From Zygnema circumcarinatum SAG 698-1b (lineage: Eukaryota > Plantae > Zygnematophyceae): 64,000 nucleotides of DNA. Below, piece by piece: positions 1-26,701 of the stretch; the stretch's first letter is position 1, and each line of letters starts with the position of its first letter. The stretch lies in the NCBI GenBank assembly GCA_037447605.1, contig CM074822.1:1-64000 (forward strand). Direction: 5' to 3'. The position numbers and the translations under genes are program-made. Under the pieces are notes generated by a model. That model made no database searches, was not told where the DNA came from, and saw nothing but the letters and a program-made list of their open reading frames with translations.

Positions 1-1010
1 GTGTTAGTGTATGATAGTTAGACATTGTTATAGCACACTAACTGTTGTAATTACTAGGTTGTAGAACTTATGAGATACGCTAAGTAGTCTTTCTTAGATT
101 TAGTAATGTCGGTGCTCGACTTTGGTGAGTCGCGCCCTTGAAGTCTTGTAGTCTGAGCAATGACGGAGATGGTCGCGGTGGTGACACAAGTAAGTGGAGT
201 CTGAATCGCCTTTGATGGTCGAAGCTGGCGTGTACGGCGTTATGAAATCTGAGGCGATCTTGACTCTGATTAGTCATGGCCAATGACTGTGAAAGCAGTC
301 TGAAGTTGACTGAAGCGACATGGAAGATGTTGGCGGCCGAACCGGAATGCATGCGTGGACCACTTCGCGATGTGGGTCCACATGATTCAGTGTCTGTGCG
401 AGATATGCGGCAGGCGAGCTGCGAAGAGGCTGGCTGGCTGGCCCGAAGCGATGCGGACGGATGCGATCCGACAAGAACACTAGGTCGGCGCGTAGTAAGG
501 TTTCACGAGGCAGCTAACTAGTATTATTTAAGTCGCATGCGGATTCCGGTGCATGGGTTTCCGCAATGGCGGGCCGGGGCGTGACATATTGTGTCACGTC
601 ACCCGGACGCCATATTCTCGAATCGCGTAGTTTTATTATGAAAAAATACCACTACGCTTTCTCGTCATAGTCTGGGTCTTACTCGGAACACCTTTCGTCT
701 TTGCTAGAAATTTTGCCTACACTGTGTCGTGAGGTAGTGAGTAAGAGGGACCTTGAAGTGGTGGGAGAACTTCATTAAGGGAAGACAGTTTTATTATAAG
801 GAGTTTTAGAGCCGTGAGCTTTATCTTGACACTCACTCATTGTGATTTCGGCCCCGTGCTTGTCTTTTTAGCTTCGTGCATTTGTTATGATGAGTGAAGT
901 AAGATAGAGCTTTGAGTGTTTGAATGTCTTCATCCGTGGGAACTCAAGTTCCAATGGAGGGCGACACCCGAGGTGGCGCCGGAAGTGGGGAGCAGACCCC
1001 TGCTTCAACA
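1..1010 (+). mobile_element. Ty1/copia LTR (3' LTR of an upstream element or a solo LTR), same family as 13251-26701; first few bases lie outside the window
   Basis: Starts GTGTTAGTGTATGATAGTTAGACATT and ends GGGGAGCAGACCCCTGCTTCAACA, matching the reverse complement of the LTR at 25682-26701. It is followed directly by satellite with no PBS. The central part is diverged or noisy. Confidence 0.92.
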
Positions 1011-4000
1011 AATTTGGCGTTCTCCCTATTCATATATGGACGTTTTTGTGACACGTGCAATAAGTTGCGTTCCTATACACGTCCACTCCGTTATACATAA
1101 CTTTTTTGTCTTTTACTTTTGTGCATCGAAATTTCTCACCGTCACTCTACAGTGAATCCGCCGTTTGCACAAAAAGTTTGAGTCAATTTGGCGTTCTCCT
1201 TGTTCAGATATGGACGTTTTTGTGACACGTGCAATTGGTTGCCTTCCTATACACGTCCACTCCGTTATATATAACTTTTTTGTCTTTTACTTTTGTGCAC
1301 CGAAATTTCTCACCGTTTGAGTCAATTTGGCGTTCTCCCTATTCAGATATGGACGTTTTTGTGACACGTGCAATTGGTTGCGTTCCTATACACGTCCACT
1401 CCGTTATATATAACTTTTTTGTCTTTTACTTTTTTGCACCGAAATTTCTCAGCGTCACTCTACAGTGAGTCCGCCGTATGCACAAAAAGTTTGAGTCAAT
1501 TAAGCGTTCTCCCTATTCAGATATGGACGTTTTTGTGACACGTGCAATAGGTTGCGTTCCTATACACGTCCACTCCGTTATACATTACTTTTTTGTCTTT
1601 TATTTTTTTGCACCGAAATTTCTCAGCGTCACTCTACAGTGAGTCCGCCGTATGCACAAAAAGTTTGAGTCAATTTAGCGTTCTCCCTATTCAGATATGG
1701 ACGTTTTTGTGACACGTGCAATAGGTTGCGTTCCTATACACGTCCACTCCGTTATATATAAATTTTTTGTCTTTTACTTTTTTGCACCGAAATTTCTCAG
1801 CGTCACTCTACAGTGAGTCCGCCGTATGCACAAAAAGTTTGAGTCAATTAAGCGTTCTCCCTATTCAGATATGGACGTTTTTGTGACACGTGCAATTGGT
1901 TGCGTTCCTATACACGTCCACTCCGTTATTTATAACTTTTTTGTCTTTTTATTTTTGTGCACCGAAATTTCTCACCATCACTCTACAGTGAATCCACCGT
2001 ATGCACAAAAAGTTTGAGTCAATTTGGCGTTCTCCCTATTCAAATATGGACGTTTTTGTGACACGTGCAATAGGTTGCGTTCCTATACACGTCCACTCCG
2101 TTATATATAACTTTTTTTTCTTTTACTTTTGTGCACCGAAATTTCTCACCGTCACTCTACAGTGAATCCGCCGTATGCACAAAAAGTTTGAGTCAATTTG
2201 GCGTTCTCCCTATTCAGATATGGACGTTTTTGTGACACGTGCAATAGGTTGCGTTCCTATACACGTCCACTCCGTTATATATAACTTTTTTGTCTTTTAC
2301 TTTTTTGCACCGAAATTTCTCACCGTCACTCTACAGTGAATCCGCCGTTTGCACAAAAAGTTTGAGTCAATTTGGCGTTCTCCTTGTTCAGATATGGACG
2401 TTTTTGTGACACGTGCAATTGGTTGCCTTCTTATACACGTCACTCCGTTATATATAACTTTTTTGTCTTTTACTTTTGTGCACCTAAATTTCTCACCGTC
2501 ACTCTACAGTGAATCCGCCGTATGCACAAAAAGTTTGAGTCGATTTGGCGTTCTCCTCGTTCAGATATGGACGTTTTTGTTACACGAGCAATTGGTTGCG
2601 TTCCTATACAAGTCCACTCCGTTATATATAACTTTTTTGTCTTTTACTTTTTTGCACCGAAATTTCTCACCGTCACCCTATAGTGAATCCGCCGTATGCA
2701 CAAAAAGTTTGAGTCAATTTAGCGTTCTCCCTATTCAGATATGGACGTTTTTGTGACACGTGCAATAGGTTGCGTTCCTATACACATCCTCTCCGTTATA
2801 TATAACTTTTTTGTCTTTTTCTTTTGTGCATCGAAATTTCTCACCGTCACTCTACACTGAATCCGCCGTATGCACAAAAAGTTTGAGTCAATTTGGCGTT
2901 CTCCCTATTCAGATATGGACGTTTTTGTGACACGTGCAATTGGTTGCGTTCCTATACACGTCCACTCCGTTATATATTACTTTTTTGTCTTTTTCTTTTG
3001 TGCATCGAAATTTCTCACCATCACTCTACAGTGAATCCACCGTATGCACAAAAAGTTTGAGTCAATTTGGCGTTCTCCTTGTTCAGATATGGACGTTTTT
3101 GTGACACGTGCAATTGGTTGCCTTCCTATACACGTCCACTCCGTTATATATAACTTTTTTGTCTTTTATTTTTGTGCCCCGAAATTTCTCACCGTCACTC
3201 TACAGTGAATCCGCCGTTTGCACAAAAAGTTTGTGTCAATTTGGCGTTCTCCTCGTTCAGATATGGACGTTTTTGTTACACGAGCAATTGGTTGCCTTCC
3301 TATACACGTCCACTCCGTTATATATAACTTTTTTGTCTTTTACTTTTGTGCACCGAAATTTCTCACAGTCACTCTACAGTGAATCCGCCGTATGCACAAA
3401 AAGTTTGAGTCAATTTGGCGTTCTCCCTATTCAGATATGGACGTTTTTGTGACACGTGCAATTGGTTGCGTTCCTATACACGTCCTCTCCGTTATATATA
3501 ACTTTTTTGTCTTTTTCTTTTGTGCATCGAAATTTCTCACCGTCACTCTACACTGAATCCGCCGTATGCACAAAAAGTTTGAGTCAATTTGGCGTTCTCC
3601 CTATTCAGATATGGACGTTTTTGTGACACGTGCAATTGGTTGCGTTCCTATACACGTCCACTCCGTTATATATAACTTTTATGTCTTTTTCTTTTGTGCA
3701 CCGAAATTTCTCACCGTCACTCTACAGTGAATCCGCCGTATGCACAAAAAGTTTGAGTCAATTTGGCGTTCTCCCTATTCAGATACGGGCCGTTTTGTGA
3801 CACGTGCAATAGGTTGCATTCCTATACACGTCCACTCCGTTATATATTACTTTTTTGTCTTTTATTTTTGTGCACCGAAATTTTTCACCGTCACTCTACA
3901 GTAAATCCGCCGTATGCACAAAAAGTTTGAGTCAATTTGGCGTTCTCCCTATTCAGATATGGACGTTTTTGTGACACGTGCAATTGGTTGCGTTCCTATA

Positions 4001-7000
4001 CACGTCCACTCCGTTATATATAAATTTTTTGTCTTTTACTTTTGTGCACCGAAATTTCTCACCGTCACTCTACAGTGAATCCGCCGTATGCACAAAAAGT
4101 TTGAGTCAATTTGGCGTTCTCCCTATTCAGATATGGACGTTTTTGTGACACGTGCAATTGGTTGCGTTCCTATACACGTCCACTCCGTTATATATAACTT
4201 TTTTGTCTTTTACTTTTGTGCACCGAAATTTCTCACCGTCACTCTACAGTGAATCCGCCGTATGCACAAAAAGTTTGAGTCAATTTGGCGTTCTCCCTAT
4301 TCAGATATGGACGTTTTTGTGACACGTGCAATAGGTTGCGTTCCTATACACGTCCACTCCGTTATATATAACTTTTTTGTCTTTTACTTTTGTGCACCGA
4401 AATTTCTCACCGTCACTCTACAGTGTAACCGCCGTATGCACAAAAAGTTTGAGTCAATTTGGCGTTCTCCCTATTCAGATATGGACGTTTTTGTGACACG
4501 TGCAATAGGTTGCGTTCCTATACACATCCTCTCCGTTATATATAACTTTTTTGTCTTTTACTTTTGTGCATCGAAATTTCTCACCGTCACTCTACAGTGA
4601 ATCCGCCGTTTGCACAAAAAGTTTGAGTCAATTTGGCGTTCTCCTCGTTCAGATATGGACGTTTTTGTGACACGTGCAATTGGTTGCCTTCTTATACACG
4701 TCCACTCCGTTATATATAACTTTTTTGTCTTTTACTTTTGTGCACCTAAATTTCTCACCGTCACTCTACAGTGAATCCGCCGTTTGCACAAAAAGTTTGT
4801 GTCAATTTGGCGTTCTCCTCGTTCAGATATGGACGTTTTTGTTACACGAGCAATTGGTTGCCTTCCTATACACGTCCACTCCGTTATATATAACTTTTTT
4901 GTCTTTTACTTTTGTGCACCGAAATTTCTCACAGTCACTCTACAGTGAATCCGCCGTATGCACAAGAAGTTTGAGTCAATTTGGCGTTCTCCCCATTCAA
5001 ATATGGACGTTTTAGTGACACGTGCAATTGGTTGCGTTCCTATACACATCCTCTCCGTTATATATAACTTTTTTGTCTTTTTCTTTTGTGCATCGAAATT
5101 TCTCACCGTCACTCTACACTGAATCCGCCGTATGCACAAAAAGTTTGAGTCAATTTGGCGTTCTCCCTATTCAGATATGGACGTTTTTGTGACACGTGCA
5201 ATTGGTTGCGTTCCTATACACGTCCACTCCGTTATATATTACTTTTTTGTCTTTTTCTTTTGTGCATCGAAATTTCTCACCATCACTCTACAGTGAATCC
5301 ACCGTATGCACAAAACGTTTGAGTCAATTTGGCGTTCTCCTTGTTCAGATATGGACGTTTTTGTGACACGTGCAATTGGTTGCCTTCCTATACACGTCCA
5401 CTCCGTTATATATAACTTTTTTGTCTTTTATTTTTGTGCCCCGAAATTTCTCACCGTCACTCTACAGTGAATCCGCCGTTTGCACAAAAAGTTTGTGTCA
5501 ATTTGGCGTTCTCCTCGTTCAGATATGGACGTTTTTGTTACACGAGCAATTGGTTGCCTTCCTATACACGTCCACTCCGTTATATATAACTTTTTTGTCT
5601 TTTACTTTTGTGCACCGAAATTTCTCACAGTCACTCTACAGTGAATCCGCCGTATGCACAAGAAGTTTGAGTCAATTTGGCGTTCTCCCCATTCAAATAT
5701 GGACGTTTTAGTGACACGTGCAATTGGTTGCGTTCCTATACACGTCCACTCCGTTATATATAACTTTTTTGTCTTTTACTTTTGTGCATCGAAATTTCTC
5801 ACCGTCACTCTACAGTGAATCCGCCGTATGCACAAAAAGTTTGAGTCAATTTGGCGTTCTCCCTATTCAGATATGGACGTTTTTGTGACACGTGCAATTG
5901 GTTGCGTTCCTATACACGTCCACTCCGTTATATATAACTTTTTTGTCTTTTACTTTTTTGCACCGAAATTTCTCACCGTCACCCTATAGTGAATCCGCCG
6001 TATGCACAAAAAGTTTGAGTCAATTTGGCGTTCTCCCTATTCAGATATGGACGTTTTTGTGACACGTGCAATAGGTTGCATTCCTATACACGTCCACTCC
6101 GTTATATATTACTTTTTTGTCTTTTATTTTTGTGCACCGAAATTTTTCACCGTCACTCTACAATAAATCCGCCGTATGCACAAAAAGTTTGAGTCAATTT
6201 GGCGTTCTCCCTATTCAGATATGGACGTTTTTGTGACACGTGCAATTGGTTGCGTTCCTATACACGTCCACTCCGTTATATATAAATTTTTTGTCTTTTA
6301 CTTTTGTGCACCGAAATTTCTCACAGTCACTCTACAGTGAATCCGCCGTATGGACAAAAAGTTTGAGTTAATTTGGCGTTCTCCCCATTCAGATATGGAC
6401 GTTTTAGTGACACGAGCAATTGGTTGCGTTCCTATACACGTCCACTTCGTTATATATAACTTTTTTTTCTCTTACTTTTGTGCACCGAAATTTCTCACCG
6501 TTACTCTACAGTGAATCCGCCGTATGCACAAAAAGTTTGAGTCAATTTGGCGTTCTCCCTATTGAGATATGGACGTTTTTGTGACACGTGCAATTGGTTG
6601 CGTTCCTATACACGTCCACTCCGTTATATATAACTTTTTTTTCTTTTACTTTTGTGCACCGAAATTTCTCACCGTCACTCTACAGTGTAACCGCCGTATG
6701 CACAAAAAGTTTGAGTCAATTTGGCGTTCTCCCTATTCAGAAATGGACGTTTTTGTGACACGTGCAATAGGTTGCGTTCCTATACACATCCTCTCCGTTA
6801 TATATAACTTTTTTGTCTTTTACTTTTGTGCATCGAAATTTCTCACCGTCACTCTACAGTGAATCCGCCGTATGCACAAAAAGTTTAAGTCAATTTGGCG
6901 TTCTCCCTATTCAGATATGGACGTTTTTGTGACACGTGCAATTGGTTGCCTTCCTATACACGTCCACTCCGTTATATATAACTTTTTTGTCTTTTACTTT

Positions 7001-10000
7001 TGTGCACCTAAATTTCTCACCGTCACTCTACAGTGAATCCGCCGTTTGCACAAAAAGTTTGTGTCAATTTGGCGTTCTCCTCGTTCAGATATGGACGTTT
7101 TTGTTACACGAGCAATTGGTTGCCTTCCTATACACGTCCACTTCGTTATATATAACTTTTTTTTCTCTTACTTTTGTGCACCGAAATTTCTCACCGTTAC
7201 TCTACAGTGAATCCGCCGTATGCACAAAAAGTTTGAGTCAATTTGGCGTTCTCCCTATTCAGATATGGACGTTTTTGTGACACGTGCAATTGGTTGCGTT
7301 CCTATACACGTCCACTCCGTTATATATAACTTTTTTTTCTTTTACTTTTGTGCACCGAAATTTCTCACAGTCACTCTACAGTGAATCCGCCGTATGCACA
7401 AAAAGTTTGAGTCAATTTGGCGTTCTCCCTATTCAGATACGGACCGTTTTGTGACACGTGCAATAGGTTGCATTCCTATACACGTCCACTCCGTTATATA
7501 TTACTTTTTTGTCTTTTACTTTTGTGCACCGAAATTTCTCACCGTCACTCTACAGTGAATCCGCCGTATGCACAAAAAGTTTGAGTCAATTTGGCGTTCT
7601 CCTTGTTCAGATATGGACGTTTTTGTGACACGTGCAATTGGTTGCCTTCCTATACACGTCCACTCCGTTATATATAACTTTTTTGTCTTTTATTTTTGTG
7701 CCCCGAAATTTCTCACCGTCACTCTACAGTGAATCCGCCGTTTGCACAAAAAGTTTGAGTCAATTTCGCGTTCTCCTTGTTCAGATATGGACGTTTTTGT
7801 GACACGTGCAATTGGTTGCCTTCCTATACACGTCCACTCCGTTATATATAACTTTTTTGTCTTTTACTTTTGTGCACCGAAATTTCTCACCGTTTGAGTC
7901 AATTTGGCGTTCTCCCTATTCAGATATGGACGTTTTTGTGACACGTGCAATAGGTTGCGTTCCTATACACGTCCACTCCGTTATATATAACTTTTTTGTC
8001 TTTTAGTTTTGTGCACCGAAATTTCTCAGCGTTACTCTACAGTGAGTCCGCCGTATGCACAAAAAGTTTGAGTCAATTAAGCGTTCTCCCTATTCAGATA
8101 TGGACGTTTTTGTGACACGTGCAATAGGTTGCGTTCCTATACACGTCCACTCCGTTATATATAACTTTTTTGTCTTTTACTTTTTTGCACCTAAATTTCT
8201 CACCGTCACTCTACACTGAATCCGCCGTATGCACAAAAAGTTTGAGTCAATTAAGCGTTCTCCCTATTCAGATATGGACGTTTTTGTGACACGTGCAATA
8301 GGTTGCGTTCCTATACACGTCCACTCCGTTATATATAACTTTTTTGTCTTTTATTTTTGTGCACCGAAATTTCTCACCGTCACTCTACAGTGAATCCGCC
8401 GTATGCACAAAAAGTTTGAGTCAATTTGGCGTTCTCCTTATTCAGATATGGACGTTTTTGTGACACGTGCAATTGGTTGCGTTCCTATACACGTCCACTC
8501 CGTTATATATAACTTTTTTGTCTTTTATTTTTGTGCACCGAAATTTCTCACCGTCACTCTACAGTAAATCCGCCGTATGCACAAAAAGTTTGAGTCAATT
8601 TGGCGTTCTCCCTATTCAGATATGGACGTTTTTGTGACACGTGCAATTGGTTGCCTTCCTATACACGTCCACTCCGTTACATATAACTTTTTTGTCTTTT
8701 ATTTTTGTGCATCGAAATTTCTCTCCGTCACTCTACAGTGAATCCGCCGTATGCACAAAAAGTTTGAGTCAATTTGGCGTTCTCCCTATTCTGATATGGA
8801 CGTTTTAGTGACACGTGCAATTGGTTGCGTTCCTATACACATCCTCTCCGTTATATATAACTTTTTTGTCGTTTACTTTTGTGCATCGAAATTTCTCACC
8901 GTCACTCTACAGTGAATCCGCCGTATGCACAAAAAGTTTGAGTCAATTTGGCGTTCTCCCTATTCAGATATGGACGTTTTTGTGCCACGTGCAATTGGTT
9001 GCCTTACTATACACGTCCACTCCGTTACATGTAACTTTTTTGTCTTTTATTTTTGTGCATCGAAATTTCTCACCGTCACTCTACAGTGAATCCGCCGTAT
9101 GCACAAAAAGTTTGAGTCAATTTGGCGTTCTCTCTATTCTGATATGGACGTTTTTGTGTCACGTGCAATTGGTTGCGTTCCTATACACGTCCACTTCGTT
9201 ATATATAACTTTTTTGTCTTTTACTTTTGTTCACCGAAATTTCTCACCGTCACTCTACAGTGAATCCGCCGTATGCACAAAAAGTTTGAGTCAATTTGGC
9301 GTTCTCCCTATTCAGATATGGACGTTTTTGTGACACGTGCAATTGGTTGCGTTCCTATACACGTCCACTCCGTTATATAAAACTTTTTTGTCTTTTACTT
9401 TTGTGCACCGAAATTTTTCACCGTCACTCTACAGTGTAACCGCCGTATGCACAAAAAGTTTGAGTCTATTTGGCGTTCTCCCTATTCAGATATGGACGTT
9501 TTTGTGACACGTGCAATAGGTTGCGTTCCTATACACATCCTCTCCGTTATATATAAATTTTTTGTCGTTTACTTTTGTGCATCGAAATTTCTCACCGTCA
9601 CTCTACAGTGAATCCGCCGTTTGCACAAAAAGTTTGAGTCAATTTGGCGTTCTCCTCGTTCAGATATGGACGTTTTTGTGACACGTGCAATTGGTTGCCT
9701 TCCTATACACGTCCACTCCGTTATATATAACTTTTTTGTCTTTTACTTTTGTGCCCCGAAATTTCTCACCGTCACTCTAGAGTGAATCCGCCAAATGCAC
9801 AAAACGTTTGAGTCAATTTGGCGTTCTCCCTATTCAGATATGGACGTTTTTGTGACACGTGCAATTGGTTCCCTTACTATACACGTCCACTCCGTTACAT
9901 ATAACTTTTTTGTCTTTTGTTTTTGTGCATCGAAATTTCTCACCGTCACTCTACAGTGAATCCGCCGTATGCACAAAAAGTTTGAGTCAATTTGGCGTTC

Positions 10001-13000
10001 TCCCTATTCTGATATGGACGTTTTTGGGGCCCCTTCAATTGGTTGCGTTCCTATACACGTCCACTTCGTTATATATAACTTTTTTGTCTTTTACTTTTGT
10101 GCACCGAAATTTCTCACCGTCACTCTACAGTGAATCCGCCGTATGCACAAAAAGTTTGAGTCAATTTGGCGTTCTCCCTACTCAGATATGGACGTTTTTG
10201 TGACACGTGCAATTGGTTGCGTTCCTATACACGTCCACTCCGTTATATATAACTTTTTTGTCTTTTACTTTTGTGCACCGAAATTTTTCACCGTCATTAT
10301 ACAGTGTAACCGCCGTATGCACAAAAAGTTTGAGTCAATTTGGCGTTCTCCCTATTCAGATATGGACGTTTTTGTGACACGTGCAATAGGTTGCGTTCCT
10401 ATACACATCCTCTCCGTTATATATAACTTTTTTGTCTTTTACTTTTGTGCATCGAAATTTCTCACCGTCACTCTACAGTGAATCCGCCGTTTGCACAAAA
10501 AGTTTGAGTCAATTTGGCGTTCTCCCCATTCAGATATGGACGTTTTAGTGACACGTGCAATTGGTTGCGTTCCTATTCACGTCCACTCCGTTATATATAA
10601 CTTTTTTGTCTTTTACTTTTGTGCACCGAAATTTCTCACAGTCACTCTACAGTGAATCCGCCGTATGCACAAGAAGTTTGAGTCAATTTGGCGTTCTCCC
10701 CATTCAAATATGGACGTTTTAGTGACACGTGCAATTGGTTGCGTTCCTATACACGTCCTCTCCGTTATATATAACTTTTTTGTCTTTTACTTTTGTGCAC
10801 CGAAATTTCTCACAGTCACTCTACAGTGAATCCGCCGTTTGCACAAAAAGTTTGAGTCAATTTGGCGTTCTCCTCGTTCAGATATGGACGTTTTTGTGAC
10901 ACGTGCAATAGGTTGCTTTCCTATACACGTCCACTCCGTTATACATAAGTTTTTTGTCTTTTACTTTTGTGCACCGAAATTTCTCACAGTCACTCTACAG
11001 TGAATCCGCCGTATGCACAAGAAGTTTGAGTCAATTTGCCGTTCTCCCCATTCAAATATAGACGTTTAGTAACCGCGTCACCGGTGGTTGCGCGTTCACA
11101 TACACGTCACTCCGTTACTCTCTATTAACTTTTTTGTCTTTTCTTTTTGTGCGCGAAATTTCTCACCGTCACTCTGATGAATCCAGCATGCACAAAAGGA
11201 TTTGAGTCAATTACCCAATTGTTCTCCTGACCAGAGATCTACGGACCGTTTGTAACCGCGTGCAATAGGTTGCACTCCTACACACGTCCACTCCGATATA
11301 CATATCTTTTTTGTCTTTTATTTTTGTGCACCGAAATTTTTCACCGTCACTCTACAGTTAATCCGCCGTATGCACAAAAAGTTTGAGTCAATTTGGCGTT
11401 CTCCCTATTCAGATATGAACGTTTTTGTGACACGTGCAATAGGTTGCGTTCATATACACGTCCACTCCGTTATACATAACTTTTTTGTCTTTTATTTTTG
11501 TGCATCGAAATTTCTCACCGTCACTCTACAGTGAATCCGCCGTATGCACAAAACGTTTGAGTCAATTTGGCGTTCTCCTTGTTCAGATATGGACGTTTTT
11601 GTGACACGTGCAATTGGTTGCCTTCCTATACACGTCCACTCCGTTATATATAACTTTTTTGTCTTTTACTTTTGTGCACTTAAATTTCTCACCGTCACTC
11701 TACAGTAAATCCGCCGTATGCACAAAAAGTTTAAGTCAATTTGGCGTTCTCCCTATTCAGATATGGACGTTTTTGTGACACGTGCAATAGGTTGCTTTCC
11801 TATACACATCCACTCCGTTATATATAACTTTTTGTCTTTTACTTTTGTGCACCAGAATTTCTCACCGTTTGGCAGGTCAATTTTGGCGTTCTCCTATTCA
11901 GATATGGACGTTTTTGTGACCGCGTTGCAATAGGTTGGATTCATATACACGTCCCTCCGTTCTCCACATAACTTTTTGTCTTTTACTTTTGTGCATCGAA
12001 ATTTCTCACCGTCACTCTACAGTGAATCCGCCGTATGCACAAAACGTTTGAGTCAATTTGGCGTTCTCCTTGTTCAGATATGGACGTTTTTGTGACACGT
12101 GCAATTGGTTGCCTTCCTATACACGTCCACTCCGTTATATATAACTTTTTTGTCTTTTATTTTTGTGCCCCGAAATTTCTCACCGTCACTCTACAGTGAA
12201 TCCGCCGTTTGCACAAAAAGTTTGAGTCAATTTGGCGTTCTCCTTGTTCAGATATGGACGTTTTTGTGACACGTGCAATTGGTTGCCTTCCTATACACGT
12301 CCACTCCGTTATATATAACTTTTTTGTCTTTTACTTTTGTGCACCGAAATTACTCACCGTCACTCTACAGTGAATCCGCCGTATGCACAAAAGGTTTGAG
12401 TCAATTTGGCGTTCTCCCTACTCAGATATGGACGTTTTTGTGACACGTGCAATAGGTTGCGTTCCTATACACGTCCTCACCGTTATATATAACTTTTTTG
12501 TCTTTTATTTTTTTGCACCGAAATTTCTCAGCGTCACGCTACAATGTGTCCGCCGTATGCACAAAAAGTTTGAGTCAATTTAGCGTTCTCCGTATTCAGA
12601 TATGGACGTTTTTGTGACACGTGCAATCGGTTGCGTTCCTATACACGTCCACTCCGTTAAATATAACTTTTTTGTCTTTTACTTTTTTGCACCGAAATTT
12701 CTTAGCGTCACGCGATTGTGTGTCTGCCGTATCCAAAAAACGTTTGAGTCAATTTCGCGTTCTCCTTATTCAGTTATGGACCATTTTGTGACTCGTGTAA
12801 CAGATTTGCGTTCCTATACACGTCCACTCCGTTATATCTATCTTTTTTGTCTTTTTTTTTTTTGCACCGAAATTTTTGAGCGTCACGCGATAGTGTCTCT
12901 GCAGTATCAAAAAAAAGTTTGAGACAATTTGGCGTTCTGCTTATTCAGTTATGGACCGTTTTGTGACTCGTGTAACAGGTTTGCGTTCCTATACTCGTCC

Positions 13001-13923: not shown

Positions 13924-13934
13924 ATCCCCCTCTT
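13924..13934 (-). other. Polypurine tract (PPT) of outer copia
   Basis: Minus-strand AAGAGGGGGAT lies immediately before the TGTT start of the 3' LTR, just after the pol stop at 13940. Confidence 0.85.
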
Positions 13935-13939
13935 GGGAC

Positions 13940-15514: not shown

Positions 15515-17120
15515 AAAACAGTGGGCAGCTCCTTCGAGGTCGGCCCGAGTCGTAGAGGCACTCTTTCGTACTAGATTGATGCAGCGAAGGCTGTAGTGAT
15601 CAGGCCTCCCTCACCTACCAGGTGCTCCTCCGAGGTCGCCTGGCTCTCCGGCTCCTGCGTGTTGAAAATCCCGGGACAAACCGGAGGCATGCTTTCGGCA
15701 ACCGCCAGCCTCTTTCTCGGCCGTCTCCAAATCCTCAGACTCCTGCCCATGCAAAGGTACAGTTTCGGCCGAGTTCTCCTCGTCGGACAGGTGAGTGTGT
15801 AGTGGTGCCGTCTCCGTCGAAGGTTGCGGCTCCCCCGCTTGCGGCTCCTCGGGTTCAACTCCCACGGCCGCTTCCACGTTCGGCGTTGCTTCAAGCTCAG
15901 CTCCCGCGCTCTCAGGCGTGCTGATCTCCTCTGAAGCTGTGACCTGAGAGGCGTCCATGCCCTCTTCGCTGGTCTCCACATCCTCGCATACAATTTCCAA
16001 CCTGTCTTTGGGGTGCGGTCTCACTCTAGCCGAAGTCACCTTCTCGCCCACTGTGAACGCTCTCGAAGCCGCGACTTCGCTTGCTCGAGGATTCCAGCTA
16101 ATCTCGTGAGGTGCTTACTGTCTATGTTGTAGCCGAAGGTACCTTCCACTGCCCGGGTCGAACTTTCTGCTCCTTCTTCTCGCATCGCTTTAATCAGCAA
16201 ATGTAAGGCTTCCAAAGGTCTTGTGGACAATCGGGTTTCTCCCACTCACACCTCTTCGTGAACCCTCGGGACCTAAGCACGTAAGATAAGCATCTATTTC
16301 TATGTAAGTTGCGTCATCACCGCCTCCCCAAAAAGATGCCTGAAGGGGAATCTATCAAAGATGGTTCGTGCTATGTCCCCAAATTGGCCCTATTGACCCT
16401 CTCAAGAGCTCCATTACTTTGAGGAGAGTAAGGAGATAAAATTCATGCCTTATTCATGAAAGCCTTCAAGTACCCGGCCAACTCCTTCACTTGAATTCCT
16501 CCGTTGTCTGAGCCAGCTGCCTTCAGTTTTCTAATCGCCTCTCGCCCATCCGAAGTTCCGCTAATCTCCTCAAAAGGTTCAAAGCTTCTCGTGACTTGTA
16601 CTTGGAGAATTTTCACCCAAATATTCCTCGAAAAATCATCGAGGAAGGTGATGAAGTAGCGAGCTCCTCCGCTCGTTGCCGGTGTCACGGGGCCACACAA
16701 ATCGGTATGTACCAATTCCAGTTTCTCCTGCGCGTGAAATGATTCCTCTCCACTCCTCGAAAAGGGTCTCCGATGCGCCTTCCCCTCTACACACTCTTTG
16801 CAAAAGCCTAGCTCCTTCTCAACTATGTCAATGTCTAACCCGCGTACCAGCCCCCTTGTAGCAAGCTGTTGCAGTCCCCTATGGTTTAGATGACCAAGTC
16901 TACGATGCCAGAGATTTACTGCACCCTCAGTTACGGCCATCACACCCTCATCTTCTTCTCTCCTATAATGAAGGTAATATAGGCCTCCCTTCTCGTACCC
17001 CTCAAACAGCCGCTTCCCCGACTCCAAGTGAGTGGCTACGCAAGACTTCTCCTTAAAGGTGACTTCGTACCCCCTCTTACATACTTGACTAACAGACATG
17101 AAGTTCTGTTTCAGGTCAGG
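15515..17120 (-). pseudogene. Copia GAG-pre-integrase, integrase core and acidic C-terminal linker (many indels at 16050-16620)
   Basis: LWHRRLGHLN...CKECVEGK (HHCC zinc finger), LELVHTDLCGP, FITFLDDFSR and SDNGG; colinear with the copy at 21000-22400. Confidence 0.9.
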
Positions 17121-19864
17121 TGTAGCGAACTGAACGCTACAGACACCACGGTGCCGCCGGCATCCTGAGGATCTCCGTACGGTTCGGCCGTACAAGCCGT
17201 CCGTACAGTTGTACGGTGTAGCCGTACGGATTCGTACCACTCGTACGGACGGTACGGACTGACGGCGATTCTGCGGCGTCGCGCGTCGCGTTCGAGATCG
17301 GAACGCGACCACGACCGCCGGTCGCTATACGGAGTGACGTGTCACGGTCACACATTGGGAATGCTGGTGACCGTGACCGGCCTCTCATACAACTGGCATT
17401 GGACCAGCCGATTGGCCACGTGGCATAGCGCCATTGGCTAGCCCTGCTCCCGGTCCCTTACGCTGGTAAAGGGTTCGACGGGGGGAGCGTATAAGGGGCG
17501 TGGGATGAATGCAAGAGGGGGTCCTGGGAAGGGGGCACTTGCAATTGTTCCAGAAACCAGCATTACGTTTAAGTGACTTAGTCTCTAGCAGGCTTTGGGT
17601 GTTGTGCTCAAGGCTTGTTACATTTTGGTATCAGAGCTTGTGTTTCTCTTGCTAGGATTGTTTGTGCAATGAAGGCATTTCCAGAATTTCCGCCTTTTCC
17701 GCCTTCCAGCCCTGAGGACCAAGAGGACCACCCGATGGAGGAGAATCCAGAGGGGGATGAGACGACAAATCCACGGGGTCCTTCTCTCATCGACTACAGC
17801 CCGTCTCCTTGCAGCAGCCCGGAGCAAGCGCCTCCTGCACCCATTCAGAATGATCCTCCACCGCCACCTGCGGCTGAGACGAACATCACTGCCGGAGCAG
17901 CCTTGAACCTTCAGAAAGACGTGCGAGGGGTTCAGGCCAAGATTGGTCAGTACGAGACTCTCCTTGTGACCCAAAGACAGGAGATGGCGCAGATGGAGCG
18001 CAACGTTCAAAAGAAGATGGACAAGCTTCGTGCGGACCTACGAGGGGATTTGGCCCTCGCCATGAAGAACTTGACGGCAGCAAAAGGTACGTCCAACATT
18101 CCCCAGGCCGACGCCGTTGAGGTAGAGAAAGATCTACCTGGGGTAGCTGATGGGGTAGCACCATCAAATGCCACGAGAACTGCGACCCAACCTGTTGCCT
18201 CAAACAGCAGACGGTCGTCTGGACCCCCTGCCTCTTCTACAGGGGGGAGTCATCCCAACGGGGGTGGCGCACCTTCCAGTGGTGGTGGATCCCCTTCGGG
18301 ATCGCCCTCTGGTGATGGGGGACTTCCTGGAACAGGATCCGGCCCCTTGGTCCCTCCTCAAGATTGGTCTTTGAGGAACAGGGCCAAGGTAACCCCCATT
18401 TCTCCTTGGGGAGAACACCCTGCAACCGACTGTTCTATTGAACAGTGGTTGGGCCAAGTGAAGGGTTACCTTCACGCCACGAATTGCCCACAGAAGGAGT
18501 GGGTGAATTTTTCCTATCCATCACTTCGCGGCGATGCCTATCGTGTATACGAGAGCTTAGCCACTAAGATTGGGAGTGATTGGGAGAAATTCCGCAAGGA
18601 ACTTGAGCGTCATTTTGGGGTTTTGGATCCTGGAATGGAAGCGCGTCAAAGGTACCACAGTATGGTACAAACTGGTAGTGCCAAGAAGTTCTTGCGAGAT
18701 CTGCGTATGACGGTGTCACTCATTAAGACACATCGTCCTACTGATGAAGCAGTGTTTTATCACTTCTGGATGGGCCTGAAGCCGCATTTGACGAAGGAAT
18801 TGCGATTAAATCCACGTACATCTCAACCGTGGGAGCCCGTGGATGCAGAATTCTTCTATGCGGCGGCTTTGCAAGCTGATTCCTTTCCTGGCGGCAGCGC
18901 CGGGCCTTCACGTCCACCACCTCCAGAGGCAGACCGGAAGCTCTTCCCTTTATTTCCAAAGCTTAAGGGGGCGAATCCGCAAAAGAGGAAGCCGAGTGCA
19001 ACCTCTGCCCCACAGCCTTCTGCGAAGGTGCAGAAGCTTACTCCAGAGGAAATGGAGAAGATGAAGAAGGACGGACGTTGTTTCCGATGCCGACAGTCTG
19101 GCCATATGGCGAAAGATTGTCCGCAGAGTCTCAAGGGACAAAGAAGGGAAAAGGGCCGGAAAACGGCACACCACCAGCAGTGTAGGAGTCGCTGCGGGTG
19201 GAGAAGATGGATTAAGGATTGCAGCTGCTGCCATCAGTTCTAGAGGCTTGCTTGTACCACAACCTCTTGATATTCTGAATGTGATGGGCAGACAGCCGGA
19301 TGACCATGATGTATTTGTGACTTTGTGTCCTGAGCATCTAAATGTGATTCCATTCTCGATTTCCTTAATCGTGACTCCTGACTCTTTCATGAATGTTGTG
19401 ATGAATGGAGAACAATTTTGACCTGCTTGGATTTTGAACCGTCCGTACAGTCGTACGGTGTAGCCGTACGGATTCGTACCACCCGTACGGACGGTACGGA
19501 CTGACGGCGATTCTGCGGCGTCGCGCGTCGCGTTCGAGATCGGAACGCGACCACGACCGCCGGTCGCTATACGGAGTGACGTGTCACGGTCACACATTGG
19601 GAATGCTGGTGACCGTGACCGGCCTCTCATACAACTGGCATTGGACCAGCCGATTGGCCACGTGGCATAGCGCCATTGGCTAGCCCTGCTCCCGGTCCCT
19701 TACGCTGGTAAAGGGTTCGACGGGGGGAGCGTATAAGGGGCGTGGGATGAATGCAAGAGGGGGTCCTGGGAAGGGGGCACTTGCAATTGTTCCAGAAACC
19801 AGCATTACGTTTAAGTGACTTAGTCTCTAGCAGGCTTTGGGTGTTGTGCTCAAGGCTTGTTACA
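17121..19864 (+). mobile_element. Nested Ty3/gypsy-type LTR retroelement, gag only (pol, PPT and start of 3' LTR deleted)
   Basis: TGTAGC...GTTACA termini; TSD TCAGG at 17116-17120 and 19865-19869; 5' LTR 17121-17622; PBS TGGTATCAGAGC at 17626-17637; the 3' LTR (19439-19864) equals the last 426 bp of the 5' LTR. Confidence 0.93.
17669..19243 (+). CDS. Ty3/gypsy-type Gag (retrotransposon gag domain + CCHC zinc knuckle)
   Basis: First ATG after the PBS. IEQWLGQVKGYL...LRGDAYRVY...WEKFRKELERHF...YHSMVQTGS is a retrotransposon-gag-like core, followed by the knuckle CFRCRQSGHMAKDC. Confidence 0.85.
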   Translation: MKAFPEFPPFPPSSPEDQEDHPMEENPEGDETTNPRGPSLIDYSPSPCSSPEQAPPAPIQNDPPPPPAAETNITAGAALNLQKDVRGVQAKIGQYETLLVTQRQEMAQMERNVQKKMDKLRADLRGDLALAMKNLTAAKGTSNIPQADAVEVEKDLPGVADGVAPSNATRTATQPVASNSRRSSGPPASSTGGSHPNGGGAPSSGGGSPSGSPSGDGGLPGTGSGPLVPPQDWSLRNRAKVTPISPWGEHPATDCSIEQWLGQVKGYLHATNCPQKEWVNFSYPSLRGDAYRVYESLATKIGSDWEKFRKELERHFGVLDPGMEARQRYHSMVQTGSAKKFLRDLRMTVSLIKTHRPTDEAVFYHFWMGLKPHLTKELRLNPRTSQPWEPVDAEFFYAAALQADSFPGGSAGPSRPPPPEADRKLFPLFPKLKGANPQKRKPSATSAPQPSAKVQKLTPEEMEKMKKDGRCFRCRQSGHMAKDCPQSLKGQRREKGRKTAHHQQCRSRCGWRRWIKDCSCCHQF

Positions 19865-19980
19865 TCAGGGGTGTGAAGTACGTCACCGATGCACAACCGC
19901 TCTTCTCTTTCTTCTTCGTAGATGACAGAGCCGTCTCCGAGGATCATCTTTACTACTCCTCCTTTTGTAACTGTCACTCC

Positions 19981-22900
19981 TGTTGAAGCAGGGGTCTGCT
20001 CCCCACTTCCGGCGCCACCTCGGGTGTCGCCCTCCATTGGAACTTGAGTTCTCACGGATGAAGACATTCAAACACTCAAAGCTCTATCTTACTTCACTCA
20101 TCGCCCATAACAACAGAATGAAGCTAAAAGACAAGCACAGCGGAAATCACAATGAGAGAGTGTTAGGAGAAAGCTCACAGCTCTAAAACTCCTTATAATA
20201 AAACTGTCTTCCCACAATGAAGTTCTCCCACCACTTCAAGGTCCCTCTTACTCACTACCTCACGACACAAGTGTAGGCAGCCTAGCAGCACGAGCAGGTT
20301 CTGAGTAAGACCCAAGACTATGACAGAGTAGTGTAGGTGGTGTTTTTTCCATAATAAAACTACGCACTATATAATATGGCGTCCGTGACGTGACACACAT
20401 GTCACGTCCCNNNNNNNNNNGCGGTCTTGATATCAAGTTGATGTACGTGCATCCCCTCGGCCGCTGCAATCGATATTAGGGCACGGAGGGAGTTGAACTT
20501 CACCACGGGGGCGAAGGTCTCCGTGTAGTCGATTCCGTACGCCTGGCTGAAGCCCTTTGCCACCAGACGCGCCTTGTAACGGTCGACGCTCCCGTCCGCC
20601 TTTCGCTTCACCTTGAACACCCACTTGCATCCAATGGCCCTCCTTCCCCTCGGCAGCTCCTCAAGTCGCCACGTGCCGTTCTCTAGCAAACTGTCCCACT
20701 CGCTGTCAATCGCTGCTCGCCACTTCTCTCCATCGACCCCGTCGTGCGCCTCCTCAAAGGTTTGCGGTTCGGTGATCATGAAACAGTGGGCAGCTCCCGC
20801 GAGGTCCGCTGAGTCTGTAGGCACTCTTTCCTGTACTAGATTAGTCTGTGAAGGCCTGTAGTGATCAGGCCTCCTCACCACACGGGTGCTCCTCCGAGGT
20901 CCTTGCGCTCTCCGGCTCCTCGTGTTGAAGAAAATCCCCGGGACAAACCCGGGAGGCATGCTCGACAACATAGCCTCTTTTCTCGGCCGTCTCAATCCTC
21001 CGGACTCACACGCCCATGCAAAGGAGATGCGGTTTAGGCCGAGTTCTCCTGCGTCGGACGGTGAGTGTGTAGTGGTGCGTCTCGCGTTGAAGGTTGCGGC
21101 TCCCGGCTCGCGACTCCCAGCTGCGGCTCCTGGGGATTGACTCCCCGCGGCCGCTTCCGCGTTAGAAGCGTTGCTTCAAGCTTCGACTCGGCGCTCTGGT
21201 CGATCTCTCCCTCACATTTGTGACACGAGGCGTCCATGCCCTCTTAAGCTGGTCTCCACATCCTCGTACACGATTTCCAAACTGCCTTTGGGGTCTTGGT
21301 CTCACCTAATAGGAGTCACGCCCCTTCTAGTCCATGCGTCTCTCGGAAACTCACGCACTTCGTTTGCTCCGAGGATTCGCTACCATTGAGTGCAGCCCAT
21401 CCATGTTGTAGCAGAAGGTACCCTTCCACGGCTCGGGGGTCGAACTTTCTCTTCTGCCTCGCTTTCGGCACTGTCGACCAGTAGCGCGCTCCAAAGGTCT
21501 TCAGGTGGGACACCGTGGGTTTCCTCCCACTCCACACCTCTTCAGGAACCTGATCTTTAAGCACAGAAGATGGGCATCTATTTCTAAGGTAAGTTGCGGT
21601 CATCACCGCCTCTCCCCAAAAGGATGCCGGGAAGGCGGAATCTATCAGCATGGTACATGCCATGTCCCCCGGCGTCCTATTGACCTCTCGGCAGCTCCAT
21701 TACTTTGAGGGGTAGAGCGGAAAATTCATGCCTTATTCCGCGAGCCTTTAAGTACCCGCCGAACTCCTTCGACTTGAATTCCCCTCCGTTGTCTGAGCGC
21801 AGCGTCTTCAGTTTCTGACCGCTCTCTCGCTCCATCTGAGTCTGCCAATCTCTGAAAGCTCCGAAAGCTTCAGACTTGTACTTGAGAATTTTCACCCAAT
21901 TTTCCTCGAAAAATCATCAAGGAAGGTGATGAAGTAGCGAGCTCCTCCACTCGTTGCCGGTGTCACGGGGCCACACAAATCGGTATGTACCAATTCCAGT
22001 TTCTCCTGCGCGTGAAATGACTCCTCTCCACTCCTCGAAAAGGGTCTCCGATGCGCCTTCCCCTCTACACACTCTTTGCAAAAGCCTAGCTCCTTCTCAA
22101 CTATGTCAATGTCTAACCCGCGTACCAGCCCCCTTGTAGCAAGCTGTTGCAGTCCCCTATGGTTTAGATGACCAAGTCTACGATGCCAGAGATTTACTGC
22201 ACCCTCAGTTACGGCCATCACACCCTCATCTTCTTCTCTCCTATAATGAAGGTAATATAGGCCTCCCTTCTCGTACCCCTCAAACAGCCGCTTCCCCGAC
22301 TCCAAGTGAGTGGCTACGCAAGACTTCTCCTTAAAGGTGACTTCGTACCCCCTCTTACATACTTGACTAACAGACATGAAGTTCTGTTTCAGGTCAGGGG
22401 TGTGAAGTACGTCACCGATGCACAACCGCTCTTCTCTTTCTTCTTAGTAGATGATGGCCGAGCCGTCTCAGGGATCATCTTTCTTACTCCTCCTTTAAAT
22501 GCTTGTCACTCCTCTCCGGTTGCCGAGTGAGCGGTCGGGTCCTCCAAGGTGTCCGGCGTAGAGAACATTAAGCTTGTCGCCACACGTAATGCGTGGGCGC
22601 GGAGGAGTCGATCGTACATGGCGGCGGATCATAACCTGGATCTTCCCAACAAAATCAGAATGTTCAGTCAGCATGAGATTCGTCTCCACCGCCACTCTGC
22701 AATCTGTGCTCTTGTGGCCTCGCTTCTTGCATTTGAAGCAGATTCCCTTGAATCCCTTCTTGACGGATGACGATGCTCCTCCACCCCGATCTTGGGTGTT
22801 CTTGTTCTTGTAACAGTCGGCCGAGAAGTGGCCCGTCTTGCCGCACGTGTAACACGCTCCCGCAGGGGCGTTCCCCACGGTCTGCTCTCGGCGCACTTCC

Positions 22901-24596
22901 TCTTCGAACTTGTCGTGAGTGCAACGCCAACACCTTCTCCACGGTGCCTCCAACGTCTTGGACAGTGTTCTCCTCCTTGATCCTTCGTTCCCTTGCTCAA
23001 GGGTCATCGGTGTTTGTTAGAGCAGTCTAAGAGGCTGCAAGCTACGCGCTACATCAGGTCGGCGGGGCAGTCCCCTAAGCCCGGCTGATTTTATGGTCTC
23101 CCTCTAACGGTTTTTGCAGCGCTATGAATCTCTCCATTAGAGTATCAAATCTGACCATATATTCACTCAGCTTCTCTTCCGAGGACATCTTCATTTTCCC
23201 AAGCTGCGTGTAAAGGCTGACTATCGTTACGTTATCCTTTACGTCATACATCTCCTCTAAGCATCTCCACATAGCATGTGAAGTCTTAAGGTCATACAGC
23301 ATGGAAGAGGGACTTCCCCTCACGCTCATGACGATCTGGGTGAGGGCCTTGTTGTCCTTGGTCCTCCATCTGGCGAGCGCTGTGACGAACTCCGACTGCC
23401 GCTCCGCCATGGCTCCCTCCGGCTGCACCGGTGCCTTGATCGTGCCGTCAACGTACCCCAACAGCCCCTTGCCCACAAGCAAAGGAACCAGCCGCCATCT
23501 CCACCCCTTGTAGTCCGAACCATCGAACGCTGGGATGCTGAACTTCACGTGGTCCTCCTCGCCACCTTGGGCTCTGATACCACTTGTTGAAGCAGGGGTC
23601 TGCTCCCCACTTCCGGCGCCACCTCGGGTGTCGCCCTCCATTGGAACTTGAGTTCCCACGGATGAAGACATTCAAACACTCAAAGCTCTATCTTACTTCA
23701 CTCATCGCCCATAACAACAGAATGAAGCTAAAAGACAAGCACAGCGGAAATCACAATGAGAGAGTGTTAGGAGAAAGCTCACAGCTCTAAAACTCCTTAT
23801 AATAAAACTGTCTTCCCACAATGAAGTTCTCCCACCACTTCAAGGTCCCTCTTACTCACTACCTCACGACACAAGTGTAGGCAGCCTAGCAGCACGAGCA
23901 GGTTCTGAGTAAGACCCGAGACTATGACAGAGTAGTGTAGGTGGTGTTTTTTCCATAATAAAACTACGCACTATATAATATGGCGTCCGTGACGTGACAC
24001 ACATGTCACGTCCCGTCCGCCATTGCAAACCCATGCACCGAGTCTGAGTGGGCGCACTCAGAAATAGCGACTAGCTAGCTGCCTCGTAAACCTACGGCGG
24101 CGCCGACCTAGTTCTTGTCGGATCATTGCATCGCGTCCCAGGTACTGACTAGCCGTTCGCCCGGCCTCCTTAGCGCTGATCTTAAGCCCGTAGACATCTG
24201 TTGCGTACCTCGAACTTCGCGGACCCACATGGCGAGTGGTCCACGATTGGCGCATTCGGTTAGCCACCAAAAATCTTCCATGTGGATTTCGTAGCAACTT
24301 CTTTCAGCGTTTCGCTTGTCGCGTATCAGTCGTAGCGGCGTCACGACGCCGTAGTCGGCGGCCGGCCTCGACGATCAAAGTTCGCATTAGGTACTCCCTT
24401 ACTTGTGTCACCACGCTGACCCAATCGGCGCTTTCGTTCGTTACTCAGCGCTTTTCATGGCGCACTCCTAAGTCGAACACCGACATTACTAAATCTAAGA
24501 GCACTACGCCTAGCAGATCTCATGTTCTACAAACTGAGTACCACAACAAGTTAGTGTGTGCCATACAATGTCTAACTATCATACACTAACACTAAA
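19981..24596 (-). mobile_element. Inner Ty1/copia element of the same family nested in the protease region of the outer copy (N gap 20411-20420 hides most of RT/RH)
   Basis: 5' LTR ~23585-24596, PBS 23571-23582, gag 23075-23671, zinc knuckles, integrase, RT start at 20421-20780, 3' LTR remnant 19981-20410. Flanks ACTCC (19976-19980) and ACTCT/CC (~24596-24603, noisy) correspond to the single ACTCC at 22508-22512 in uninterrupted sequence. Confidence 0.88.
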
Positions 24597-24703
24597 CTCT
24601 CCCACTATAGGTTGCGAGAGTGAGCAGTCTGATTATATACTCCCGAGGTGTCCGGTAAGAGAACATTAAGCTTGTCGCCACACGTAATGAGTAAGGCGCC
24701 CGG

Positions 24704-25768
24704 TCACGATCCAGCCATGGCAGCGGATCCATAGCGTGGATCTTCCCAACAAATAGAATATTTGGTCGGCATGAGATTCGTCTCCACCGCCACTCTGCAA
24801 TCCGTGCTCTTGTGGCCTCGCTTCTTGCATTTGAAGCAGATTCCCTTGAATCCCTTCTTGACGGATGACGATGCTCCTCCACCCCGATCTTGGGTGTTCT
24901 TGTTCTTGTAACAGTCGGCCGAGAAGTGGCCCGTCTTGCCGCACGTGTAACACGCTCCCGCAGGGCGTTCCCCACGGTCTGCTCTCGGCGCACCTCCTCT
25001 TCGAACTTGTCGTGAGTGCAGCGCCAACACCTTCTCCTCGGTGCCTCCAACGTCTTGGACAGTGTTCTCCTCCTTGATCCTTCGTTTCACTTGCTCAAGG
25101 GTCATCACGGTGTTTGTTAGAACAGTCCTAAGAGCTGCAACTGCTACATCGAATCGGCCAGGCAGTCCCCCTAGAAACTGGCTGATTTTATGGTCTCCCT
25201 CTAACGGTTTTTGCAGCGCTATGAATCTCTCCATTAGAGTATCAAATCTGACCATATATTCACTCAGCTTCTCTTTCGAGGACATCTTCATTTTCCCAAG
25301 CTGCGTGTAAAGGCTGACTATCGTTACGTTATCCTTTACATCATACATCTCCTCTAAGCATCTCCACATAGCATGTGAAGTCTTAAGGTCATACAGCATG
25401 GATGAGGGACTTCCCCTCACGCTCATGATGATCTGGGTGAGGGCCTTGTTGTCCTTGGTCCTCCATCTGGCGAGCGCTGTGTCGAACTCCGACTGCTGCT
25501 CCGCCGTGGCTCCCTCCGGCTGCACCGGTGCCTTGATGGTGCCGTCAACGTACCCCAACAGCCCCTTGCCCACAAGCAAAGGAACCAGCCGCCATCTCCA
25601 CCCCTTGTAGTCCGAACCATCGAACGCTGGGATGCTGAACTTCACGTGGTCCTCCTCGCCACCTTGGGCTCTGATACCACTTGTTGAAGCAGGGGTCTGC
25701 TCCCCACTTCCGGCGCCACCTCGGGTGTCGCCCTCCATTGGAACTTGAGTTCCCACGGATGAAGACAT
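24704..25768 (-). CDS. Copia Gag of the outer element (two CCHC knuckles); ORF opens inside the LTR
   Basis: FDGSDYKGWRWRL, TSHAMWRCLEEMY, FLGGLPGRFD, CYTCGKTGHFSADC and CFKCKKRGHKSTDC. The 3' end is frameshifted in a noisy patch. Confidence 0.9.
   Translation of the reverse strand: MSSSVGTQVPMEGDTRGGAGSGEQTPASTSGIRAQGGEEDHVKFSIPAFDGSDYKGWRWRLVPLLVGKGLLGYVDGTIKAPVQPEGATAEQQSEFDTALARWRTKDNKALTQIIMSVRGSPSSMLYDLKTSHAMWRCLEEMYDVKDNVTIVSLYTQLGKMKMSSKEKLSEYMVRFDTLMERFIALQKPLEGDHKISQFLGGLPGRFDVAVAALRTVLTNTVMTLEQVKRRIKEENTVQDVGGTEEKVLALHSRQVRRGGAPRADRGERPAGACYTCGKTGHFSADCYKNKNTQDRGGGASSSVKKGFKGICFKCKKRGHKSTDCRVAVETNLMPTKYSICWEDPRYGSAAMAGS
25668..25679 (-). other. Primer-binding site complementary to the tRNA-iMet 3' end
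   Basis: TGGTATCAGAGC, 2 nt after the LTR terminal CA. Confidence 0.92.
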
Positions 25769-26701
25769 TCAAACACTCAAAGCTCTATCTTACTTCACTC
25801 ATCGCCCATAACAACAGAATGAAGCTACAAGACAAGCACAGCGGAAATCACAATGAGAGAGTGTTAGGAGAAAGCTCACGGCTCTAAAACTCCTTATAAT
25901 AAAACTGTCTTCCCACAATGAAGTTCTCCCACCACTTCAAGGTCCCTCTTACTCACTACCTCACGACACAAGTGTAGGCAGCCTAGCAGCACGAGCAGGT
26001 TCTGAGTAAGACCCGAGACTATGACAGAGTAGTGTAGGTGGGTTGCTTCCCATAATAAAACTACGCACTATATAATATGGCGTCCGTGACGTGACACACA
26101 TGTCACGTCCCGTCCGCCATTGCAAACCCATGCACCGAGTCTGAGTGGGCGCACTCAGAAATAGCGACTAGCTAGCTGCCTCGTAAACCTACGGCGGCGC
26201 CGACCTAGTTCTTGTCGGATCGTACATCCGTCCGTACAGTTTCGCCGTTTCGCCAGCGCTCCTTCGCAGTCTTCGCCCGCCGACATCTCGGCCGTACACT
26301 CGAACTCGCGGACCCACATCGCGAGTGGTCCACGTGGCGCATTCCGGTTCGCCGCCAAATATCTTCCATGTCGTTTCCGCGCCGCAACTTTGCGCTCCGC
26401 GTTTTGCGCCCGCGTCGCGACCAATCAGAGTCGCTCGCGTCCGTACTTCGCGAATCCGCGGCCGCGCCTCGACCAATCAAAGTTGCGCGTTCGTACTCCA
26501 CTTACTTGTGTCACCGCCGCGACCAATCAGCGCCGCTCGTTCGTACTCCGCGCACTCGCGGCGCACTCACCAAAGTCAGAGCACCGACATTACTAAATCT
26601 ACGAGCACTACGCCTAGCAGATCTCATGTTCTACAAACTGAGTACCACAACAAGTTAGTGTGTGCCATATAATGTCTAACTATCATACACTAACACTAAC
26701 A
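25682..26701 (-). repeat. Complete 5' LTR (1020 bp) of outer copia
   Basis: TGTTAG...TTCAACA on the minus strand, followed by the PBS. Confidence 0.95.

Follow-up and report, generated by a model that had tools for sequence, protein, structure and literature searches.

A nest of Ty1/copia and gag-only retrotransposons within a 174-bp satellite array of Zygnema circumcarinatum

The DNA analysed here, referred to as the window, comprises the first 64,000 nucleotides of CM074822.1 in the assembly GCA_037447605.1 of Zygnema circumcarinatum SAG 698-1b. Its left part consists of a 174-bp tandem satellite interrupted by long terminal repeat (LTR) retrotransposons, and its right part, from position 27696 onwards, carries genes. 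The subject of this text is the relation between the satellite and the elements that lie in it: a Ty1/copia element on the minus strand is inserted into the satellite (the outer element), a second copy of the same family (the inner element) and a gag-only element of another family are nested in the outer one, and a further, diverged LTR adjoins the array at the start of the window. The LTRs of the copia group are numbered LTR0 to LTR4 from left to right, and the repeat part reads as follows, with TSD standing for target-site duplication and PBS for primer-binding site.

2..1010, plus strand: LTR0 (TG...CA), from a diverged relative, with an overall identity of about 80% to LTR4
1011..13250, plus strand: left satellite block of about 70 monomers, the last 3 or so being 81-90% identical to the consensus
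13246..13250: left copy of the TSD TCTTT
13251..13923, minus strand: LTR1, the 3' LTR of the outer copia element, broken by a gap at 13679-13688
13924..13934, minus strand: polypurine tract AAGAGGGGGAT of the outer element, next to LTR1
13935..17120, minus strand: pol of the outer element with several frame breaks, the RNase H region lying within
14831-15514, minus strand: RVT_2 domain of the outer pol
15607-16620, minus strand: decayed and divergent integrase block of the outer pol
16446-17120, minus strand: protease/GAG-pre-integrase region of the outer pol
17121..19864, plus strand: gag-only LTR element of another family, 2744 bp, TSD TCAGG, nested in the outer protease region
17121-17622 and 19439-19864, plus strand: LTRs of the gag-only element, 99.5% identical over 426 bp
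17626-17637, plus strand: PBS TGGTATCAGAGC of the gag-only element (initiator-methionine type)
17615-19243, plus strand: open reading frame (ORF) of the gag-only element with Retrotrans_gag (PF03732) and zf-CCHC
19981..20410, minus strand: LTR2, the R-U5 part of the inner 3' LTR, cut by a gap at 20411-20420
20421..23584, minus strand: internal region of the inner element (gag, zf-CCHC, protease/pre-integrase, rve, SH3_retrovirus and the start of RVT_2)
23571-23582, minus strand: PBS of the inner element
23585..24597, minus strand: LTR3, the inner 5' LTR, its terminal TG altered
24598..25681, minus strand: leader and gag of the outer element
25668-25679, minus strand: PBS TGGTATCAGAGC of the outer element
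25682..26701, minus strand: LTR4, the complete outer 5' LTR of 1020 bp
26702..26706: right copy of the TSD TCTTT
26707..27695, plus strand: right satellite block, the degenerate edge, 5.7 monomers, 84-90% identical to the consensus

The satellite was mapped at about 1011-13250 and 26707-27695 (TRF call: 1315-13235 and 26709-27695), and a conserved 14-mer anchor identifies 74 monomer starts in it, with a spacing of exactly 174 bp for 61 of them. The 174-bp consensus has a GC content of 41%, the adjoining genes of 50-65%, and the mean pairwise identity of the monomers is about 94%. Identity to the consensus is 94-100% for the monomers between 1319 and about 12400, but only 81-90% for those at 12746-13250 and 26728-27695, and the array therefore combines a homogenised core with a decayed right edge. 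Higher-order repeat structure is absent, as monomer identity shows no peak at any lag in the array; the sole larger-scale pattern is a local duplication of 13 monomers. Variants with a 139-bp deletion occur at 1176-1455 and 7753-8033. A derivation of the satellite from the inserted elements was considered and rejected, as matches between the two are only 11-14 bp long, which is the chance level. In three public DNA runs, word depth summed over the satellite exceeds that of the LTR by a factor of about 5-12 and that of the internal region by a factor of 20-100, the ranking being satellite, LTR, copia internal region and gag-only element. Word depth from Logan contigs does not equal copy number, but with the satellite so far above the elements, the genome must contain many more monomers than the 78 in the window.

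The outer element is bordered by a perfect TCTTT duplication, as read directly in both flanks, and its LTRs have the ends TGTTAG...TTCAACA (TG..CA). Excising the element together with one copy of the duplication gives a 176-bp monomer that is in phase with the anchors at 13096 and 26728. Self-comparison by blastn detects LTR copies in one and the same orientation at 13251-13923, 19981-20410, 23585-24597 and 25682-26701. LTR3 and LTR4 are each followed by TGGTATCAGAGC, which matches the 3' end of the initiator-methionine tRNA, and both therefore are 5' LTRs. The polypurine tract lies ahead of LTR1, and past LTR2 the outer-element sequence resumes. Pfam recognises Retrotran_gag_2, zinc knuckles, gag_pre-integrs, rve, SH3_retrovirus and RVT_2, and the test for copia-type reverse transcriptase (RT) and gag gave PF07727 with E=4e-64 and PF14223 with E=2e-24. 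The order on the minus strand is gag (at about 25.7 kb), pre-integrase (about 17.0 kb), rve and SH3 (in the inner element, 21.9-21.3 kb) and RVT_2, which means that the integrase is encoded ahead of the RT, as in Ty1/copia. Because of the copia-type domains and this order, the elements are Ty1/copia (Pseudoviridae). The outer gag ORF (24704-25768, minus strand) is intact and encodes 354 amino acids with Retrotran_gag_2 and two zinc knuckles; its frame opens at an ATG at 25768, inside the 5' LTR, and runs through U5 and the PBS.

The inner element (19981-24597) is inserted in the gag-protease linker of the outer one. Its TSD is imperfect, with four of five positions agreeing (AGAGT/GGAGT), and its flanks, which are located on different contigs of the scaffold, nevertheless rejoin as outer-element sequence. 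The Kimura two-parameter (K2P) distance is 0.0047 for the inner pair LTR2/LTR3, 0.012-0.026 for the outer pair LTR1/LTR4 and about 0.02 for the cross pairs, values that fit the nesting order with the inner copy being the younger one. Thus, a first-pass annotation that had been made from the letters of the window had correctly described a minus-strand Ty1/copia element with a TCTTT duplication and a second copy nested inside. Both copies carry several frame breaks, and as all copies are defective, they were mobilised in trans.

The two copies do not differ evenly. They are 95-100% identical in the LTR ends, R-U5, leader, gag, protease and RT, but only 51-80% identical in the mid-U3 (LTR positions 100-500) and in an integrase block that comprises everything after the N-terminal zinc domain (outer 15607-16620, inner 20870-21895). 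The inner block retains the rve and SH3-like matches, whereas the outer block has no Pfam match, contains stop codons and is far rarer in public contigs than its flanks. Such divergence is too patchy for a decay after insertion, and the mosaic therefore either is older than the insertion or came about by conversion from a distant copy. The two copies may accordingly represent recombinant subfamilies, or one of them may have undergone such a conversion.

As the scaffold contains two gaps within the nest, one has to ask whether the nest might be an assembly artefact, i.e. a mis-scaffolded collapse of dispersed copies that were joined at two runs of 10 N. Such a suspicion is nourished by the fact that both gaps lie inside LTRs and begin at an identical point of the LTR, the U3/R boundary, and that both are nominal placeholders hiding about 0.3 kb and 1.8 kb, respectively. 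At gap 1 (13679-13688), which is in a non-coding region, the sequences left and right of the N run correspond to 25682-26109 and 26467-26701 of LTR4, which puts the missing part of U3 at about 357 bp; a contig of the public run X6 spans the gap with 308 letters, giving an estimated loss of about 310-360 bp, and as this bridge is another copy of the family, it shows the continuity of the LTR at this point and not the correctness of the scaffold join. Gap 2 (20411-20420) has the first third of the inner RT on one side and the R region of LTR2 on the other. Measured against the outer copy, the loss there amounts to about 1.2 kb in pol and 0.6 kb in U3, and the flanks are neither contiguous nor in frame, with no frame readable across. 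The order and orientation of the scaffold are nevertheless supported, because the first and third contigs agree in their TSD halves and in the phase of the satellite, and because the inner flanks on the second and third contigs rebuild one sequence. As the pairing of the LTRs by diagnostic differences also agrees with the nesting, and as the LTR is spanned by a public contig at gap 1, an artefact is very improbable.

The second insertion into the outer element is of another kind. The gag-only element has TG..CA ends, a perfect TCAGG TSD and a single ORF, but no pol. It belongs to a different, non-autonomous family with a Ty3-type gag, and the nest thus is not exclusive to one copia family. Its 5' LTR starts with 76 bp that are absent from the 3' LTR. 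One public run (X11) has almost no satellite depth, but contigs over the copia and gag-only elements, and its contigs over 17429-17495 depart from the window near the TATA box of the gag-only LTR (17490-17494). Should this run be an RNA library, it would point to transcription of the elements, but hardly of the satellite.

At the left end of the window, LTR0 adjoins the core satellite with its 3' end at GAGTC^AATTT, on the strand opposite to that of the other four LTRs. The first-pass annotation had assigned it to the same family, and while the junction with the satellite stands, the family assignment needs to be relaxed: LTR0 and LTR4 are 55-74% identical over most of their length and 88-92% over the last 200 bp, and by this comparison LTR0 represents a related subfamily at best. 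The conservation of the U5 end at 88-92% extends over 800-1010 in LTR0 and 25682-25890 in LTR4. The single base upstream of LTR0 is a G, which does not match an AATTT duplication, and for this reason it is slightly more likely that LTR0 is the 3' LTR of an element to the left of the window than a solo LTR. The window start is probably the scaffold start, and it probably was in this repeat that the assembly broke.

What, then, would explain the arrangement? We consider it probable that the array is a recurrent site at which LTR retrotransposons land or are retained, with the nest having formed as described. The insertions themselves can be read from the sequence: a Ty1/copia element with 1.0-kb LTRs, an initiator-methionine primer site and a 5-bp TSD inserted cleanly into a monomer of the AT-rich satellite near the edge of the array, a younger copy of the same family then entered its gag-protease region, and a non-autonomous gag-only element of another family its protease region, and the LTR of a diverged relative abuts the core of the array. 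The three insertions that had been claimed at first are indeed independent and in both orientations, but the fourth one, the other-family insertion at 17121-19864, had been missed. If insertion were uniform, finding all four insertions in the 27.7-kb repeat part of the 64-kb window would have p~0.035. In line with the original observation that the adjacent 36 kb are devoid of LTR elements, 27696-64000 is free of copia coding sequence and of long direct repeat pairs.

Support from outside the window comes from contigs of four public runs that were compared with 12900-18890; the public runs in which this DNA occurs come from five studies and are all assigned to one organism. In one Logan contig, the U3 end of the LTR (13923) is followed by three letters and then by the satellite at 13007, i.e. 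at a monomer phase of about 87. The junctions in the window, which had rightly been reported to lie at differing monomer positions, are at phases of about 5/6 and 150, and the contig thus adds a third phase. Another public contig joins the LTR end to position 13363, inside an LTR, which represents self-nesting elsewhere in the genome. As the LTR-satellite pairing recurs elsewhere, it is likely that the association of the copia family with the satellite is real genome-wide.

Several observations weigh against a landing site that is preferred as such or is centromeric. The outer insertion (K2P about 0.017) is surrounded by decayed edge monomers of 81-90% identity and not by core satellite; a p value of about 0.035 leaves room for selection against genic insertions; no targeting module was found in the integrase, which shows only rve and SH3_retrovirus and, after these, a low-complexity linker; the nest also contains a Ty3-type gag-only element, as passive accumulation predicts; the array is small here (at least 13 kb) and adjoins a gene; and the likely position at a scaffold end suits a subtelomeric repeat equally well. 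Passive accumulation would mean that integration is near-random in a gene-dense genome and that only insertions into satellite or older transposable elements escape purifying selection. The gag-only family with its PF03732 domain is unrelated to the copia family, two of the four insertions are in transposon DNA and not in satellite, the one satellite insertion that could be dated is the one in the array edge, and the distance from the array to the first gene is 560 bp, all of which such a process would readily accommodate, as it would the lack of a special integrase module. It accounts less well for the youth of the inner and gag-only elements (LTR K2P 0.0047), for the renewed finding of the satellite-family pairing in a public contig, and for the three satellite junctions of the LTR group at three distinct phases, which fit a preference that is independent of sequence. 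Passive accumulation thus is a serious alternative, to which we nevertheless give clearly less than an even chance. The recurrence, the self-nesting, the young nested copies and the junctions at several phases make an active targeting of integration plausible, but we regard it as doubtful. As to the means, the targeting module of CRM integrases is a chromodomain, whereas copia or ATHILA elements need none.

A separate question is whether the array marks a centromere. A monomer of nucleosome length (174 bp), a homogenised head-to-tail array and decayed edges are all present, and centromeric satellites typically show such a monomer length, AT-richness and homogenised core (PMC10984392). It is the monomer length, the AT-richness and the array architecture, and nothing else, that make the centromere reading plausible, and we consider it possible that the satellite marks centromeres, with the balance tipped a little to the other side. 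Higher-order repeats, which many but not all centromeric satellites have, are absent from the array. The satellite could instead be a subtelomeric or dispersed heterochromatic repeat, perhaps split into numerous small arrays, in which the copia family lives. The array is located at the apparent scaffold start, with LTR0 beginning at base 2, and only about 13 kb of it are visible next to genes. Assemblies often break inside centromeric repeats too. Streptophyte algae can carry satellites that are not regional, as exemplified by the dispersed 128-bp arrays of Spirogyra (PMC13519894). On the other hand, there is no telomere repeat next to the array in the window, and the above-mentioned properties of monomer and array are typical of centromeric satellites. 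We hold a non-centromeric repeat of this kind to be rather unlikely. The most far-reaching combination, in which the satellite would be a regional centromere satellite and the copia family a dedicated centrophile that recognises centromeric chromatin whatever its sequence, via its integrase or a factor acting in trans, appears improbable to us.

Colonisation of centromeric satellites by copia elements is of a kind already known in land plants. A close parallel is Tal1/ALE of Arabidopsis lyrata and Brassica, a copia group without chromodomain that likewise occurs in arrays of about 170-180 bp, in both orientations and with nesting (PMC10984392). For Tal1 in A. lyrata, however, de novo integration targeted to centromeres has been shown experimentally, and the satellites there are bound by CENH3 (PMC10984392), whereas the algal system is known from sequence. 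Angela and SIRE are copia elements in centromeric satellites of other angiosperms (PMC10984392; bioRxiv 10.64898/2026.09.17.752431). The Bryco copia elements of the mosses Physcomitrium and Polytrichastrum also mark candidate centromeres and nest in themselves (PMC10984392; bioRxiv 10.64898/2026.09.17.752431), but moss centromeres are transposon clusters without satellite, while the matrix in the alga is a satellite. In Chromochloris zofingiensis and Chlorella sorokiniana, which have compact algal genomes as well, copia elements are found at one region per chromosome, and the copia-rich centromere of Chlorella has been confirmed by CENH3 chromatin immunoprecipitation (PMC11005252, PMC8226300); these centromeres lack tandem satellites, and the two species are chlorophytes and not streptophytes. 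ATHILA in the CEN178 arrays of A. thaliana resembles the algal case in that an LTR element that is not a chromovirus interrupts a homogenised satellite (PMC10984392), but it is of the Ty3 type, and its youngest copies are in the core of the array, whereas the dated algal copy is in the edge.

To our knowledge, the green-algal centromeres described so far are transposon clusters, with ZeppL long interspersed nuclear elements at the centromeres of Chlamydomonas and Coccomyxa and copia in Chromochloris and Chlorella. All four algae sampled in a recent centromere atlas were reportedly termed "cryptic". In the literature that we searched, no centromere, 174-bp satellite or centrophilic copia is described for a flagellate streptophyte alga, and there is nothing specific on a 174-bp algal satellite or a copia centromere of streptophyte algae. 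The suggestion that the window might hold an undescribed satellite/copia system therefore appears to be right for the lineage as far as this literature goes, but not for the kind of system. If the centromere reading is true, green algae would have their first described centromere of the satellite type, and an architecture of satellite plus centrophile would be older than land plants. Binding of CENH3 to the satellite would extend the plant-type design of a satellite with centrophilic LTR elements to the streptophyte base and would offer a small, tractable genome in which to learn how a copia integrase without chromodomain finds centromeres. If CENH3 does not bind, the locus is an ordinary transposon nest in a heterochromatic repeat.

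The gag query returned nothing at E<=1e-5 from protein collections, and these hold no record of the exact gag and RT ORFs. The RT query retrieved 7624 copia RTs from a protein collection with a best identity of no more than 61%, and the transposon copies of this genome therefore are absent from that collection. Metagenomes were scanned with the conserved U5 end and, separately, with a core word of the satellite, in both cases without a match.

In the gene part, the first ORF past the array encodes a CUE-domain protein (28256-29671, minus strand) and lies 560 bp beyond the end of the satellite. No Rfam family was found anywhere in the 64-kb window. An Omp85 exon has its best named relatives in Spirogloea and Chara, at about 45%. 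Several simple repeats are interspersed in this part, namely a G-rich tandem repeat of 27/54/81 bp (35155-35517), a 38-bp tandem repeat of 24 copies, the youngest of which are at the 3' end (52470-53344), and a (GA)340 tract (59512-60189). Moreover, an interstitial array of about 12 copies of the 9-bp telomere-like unit AACCCTAAA is located among the genes at 42045-42154.

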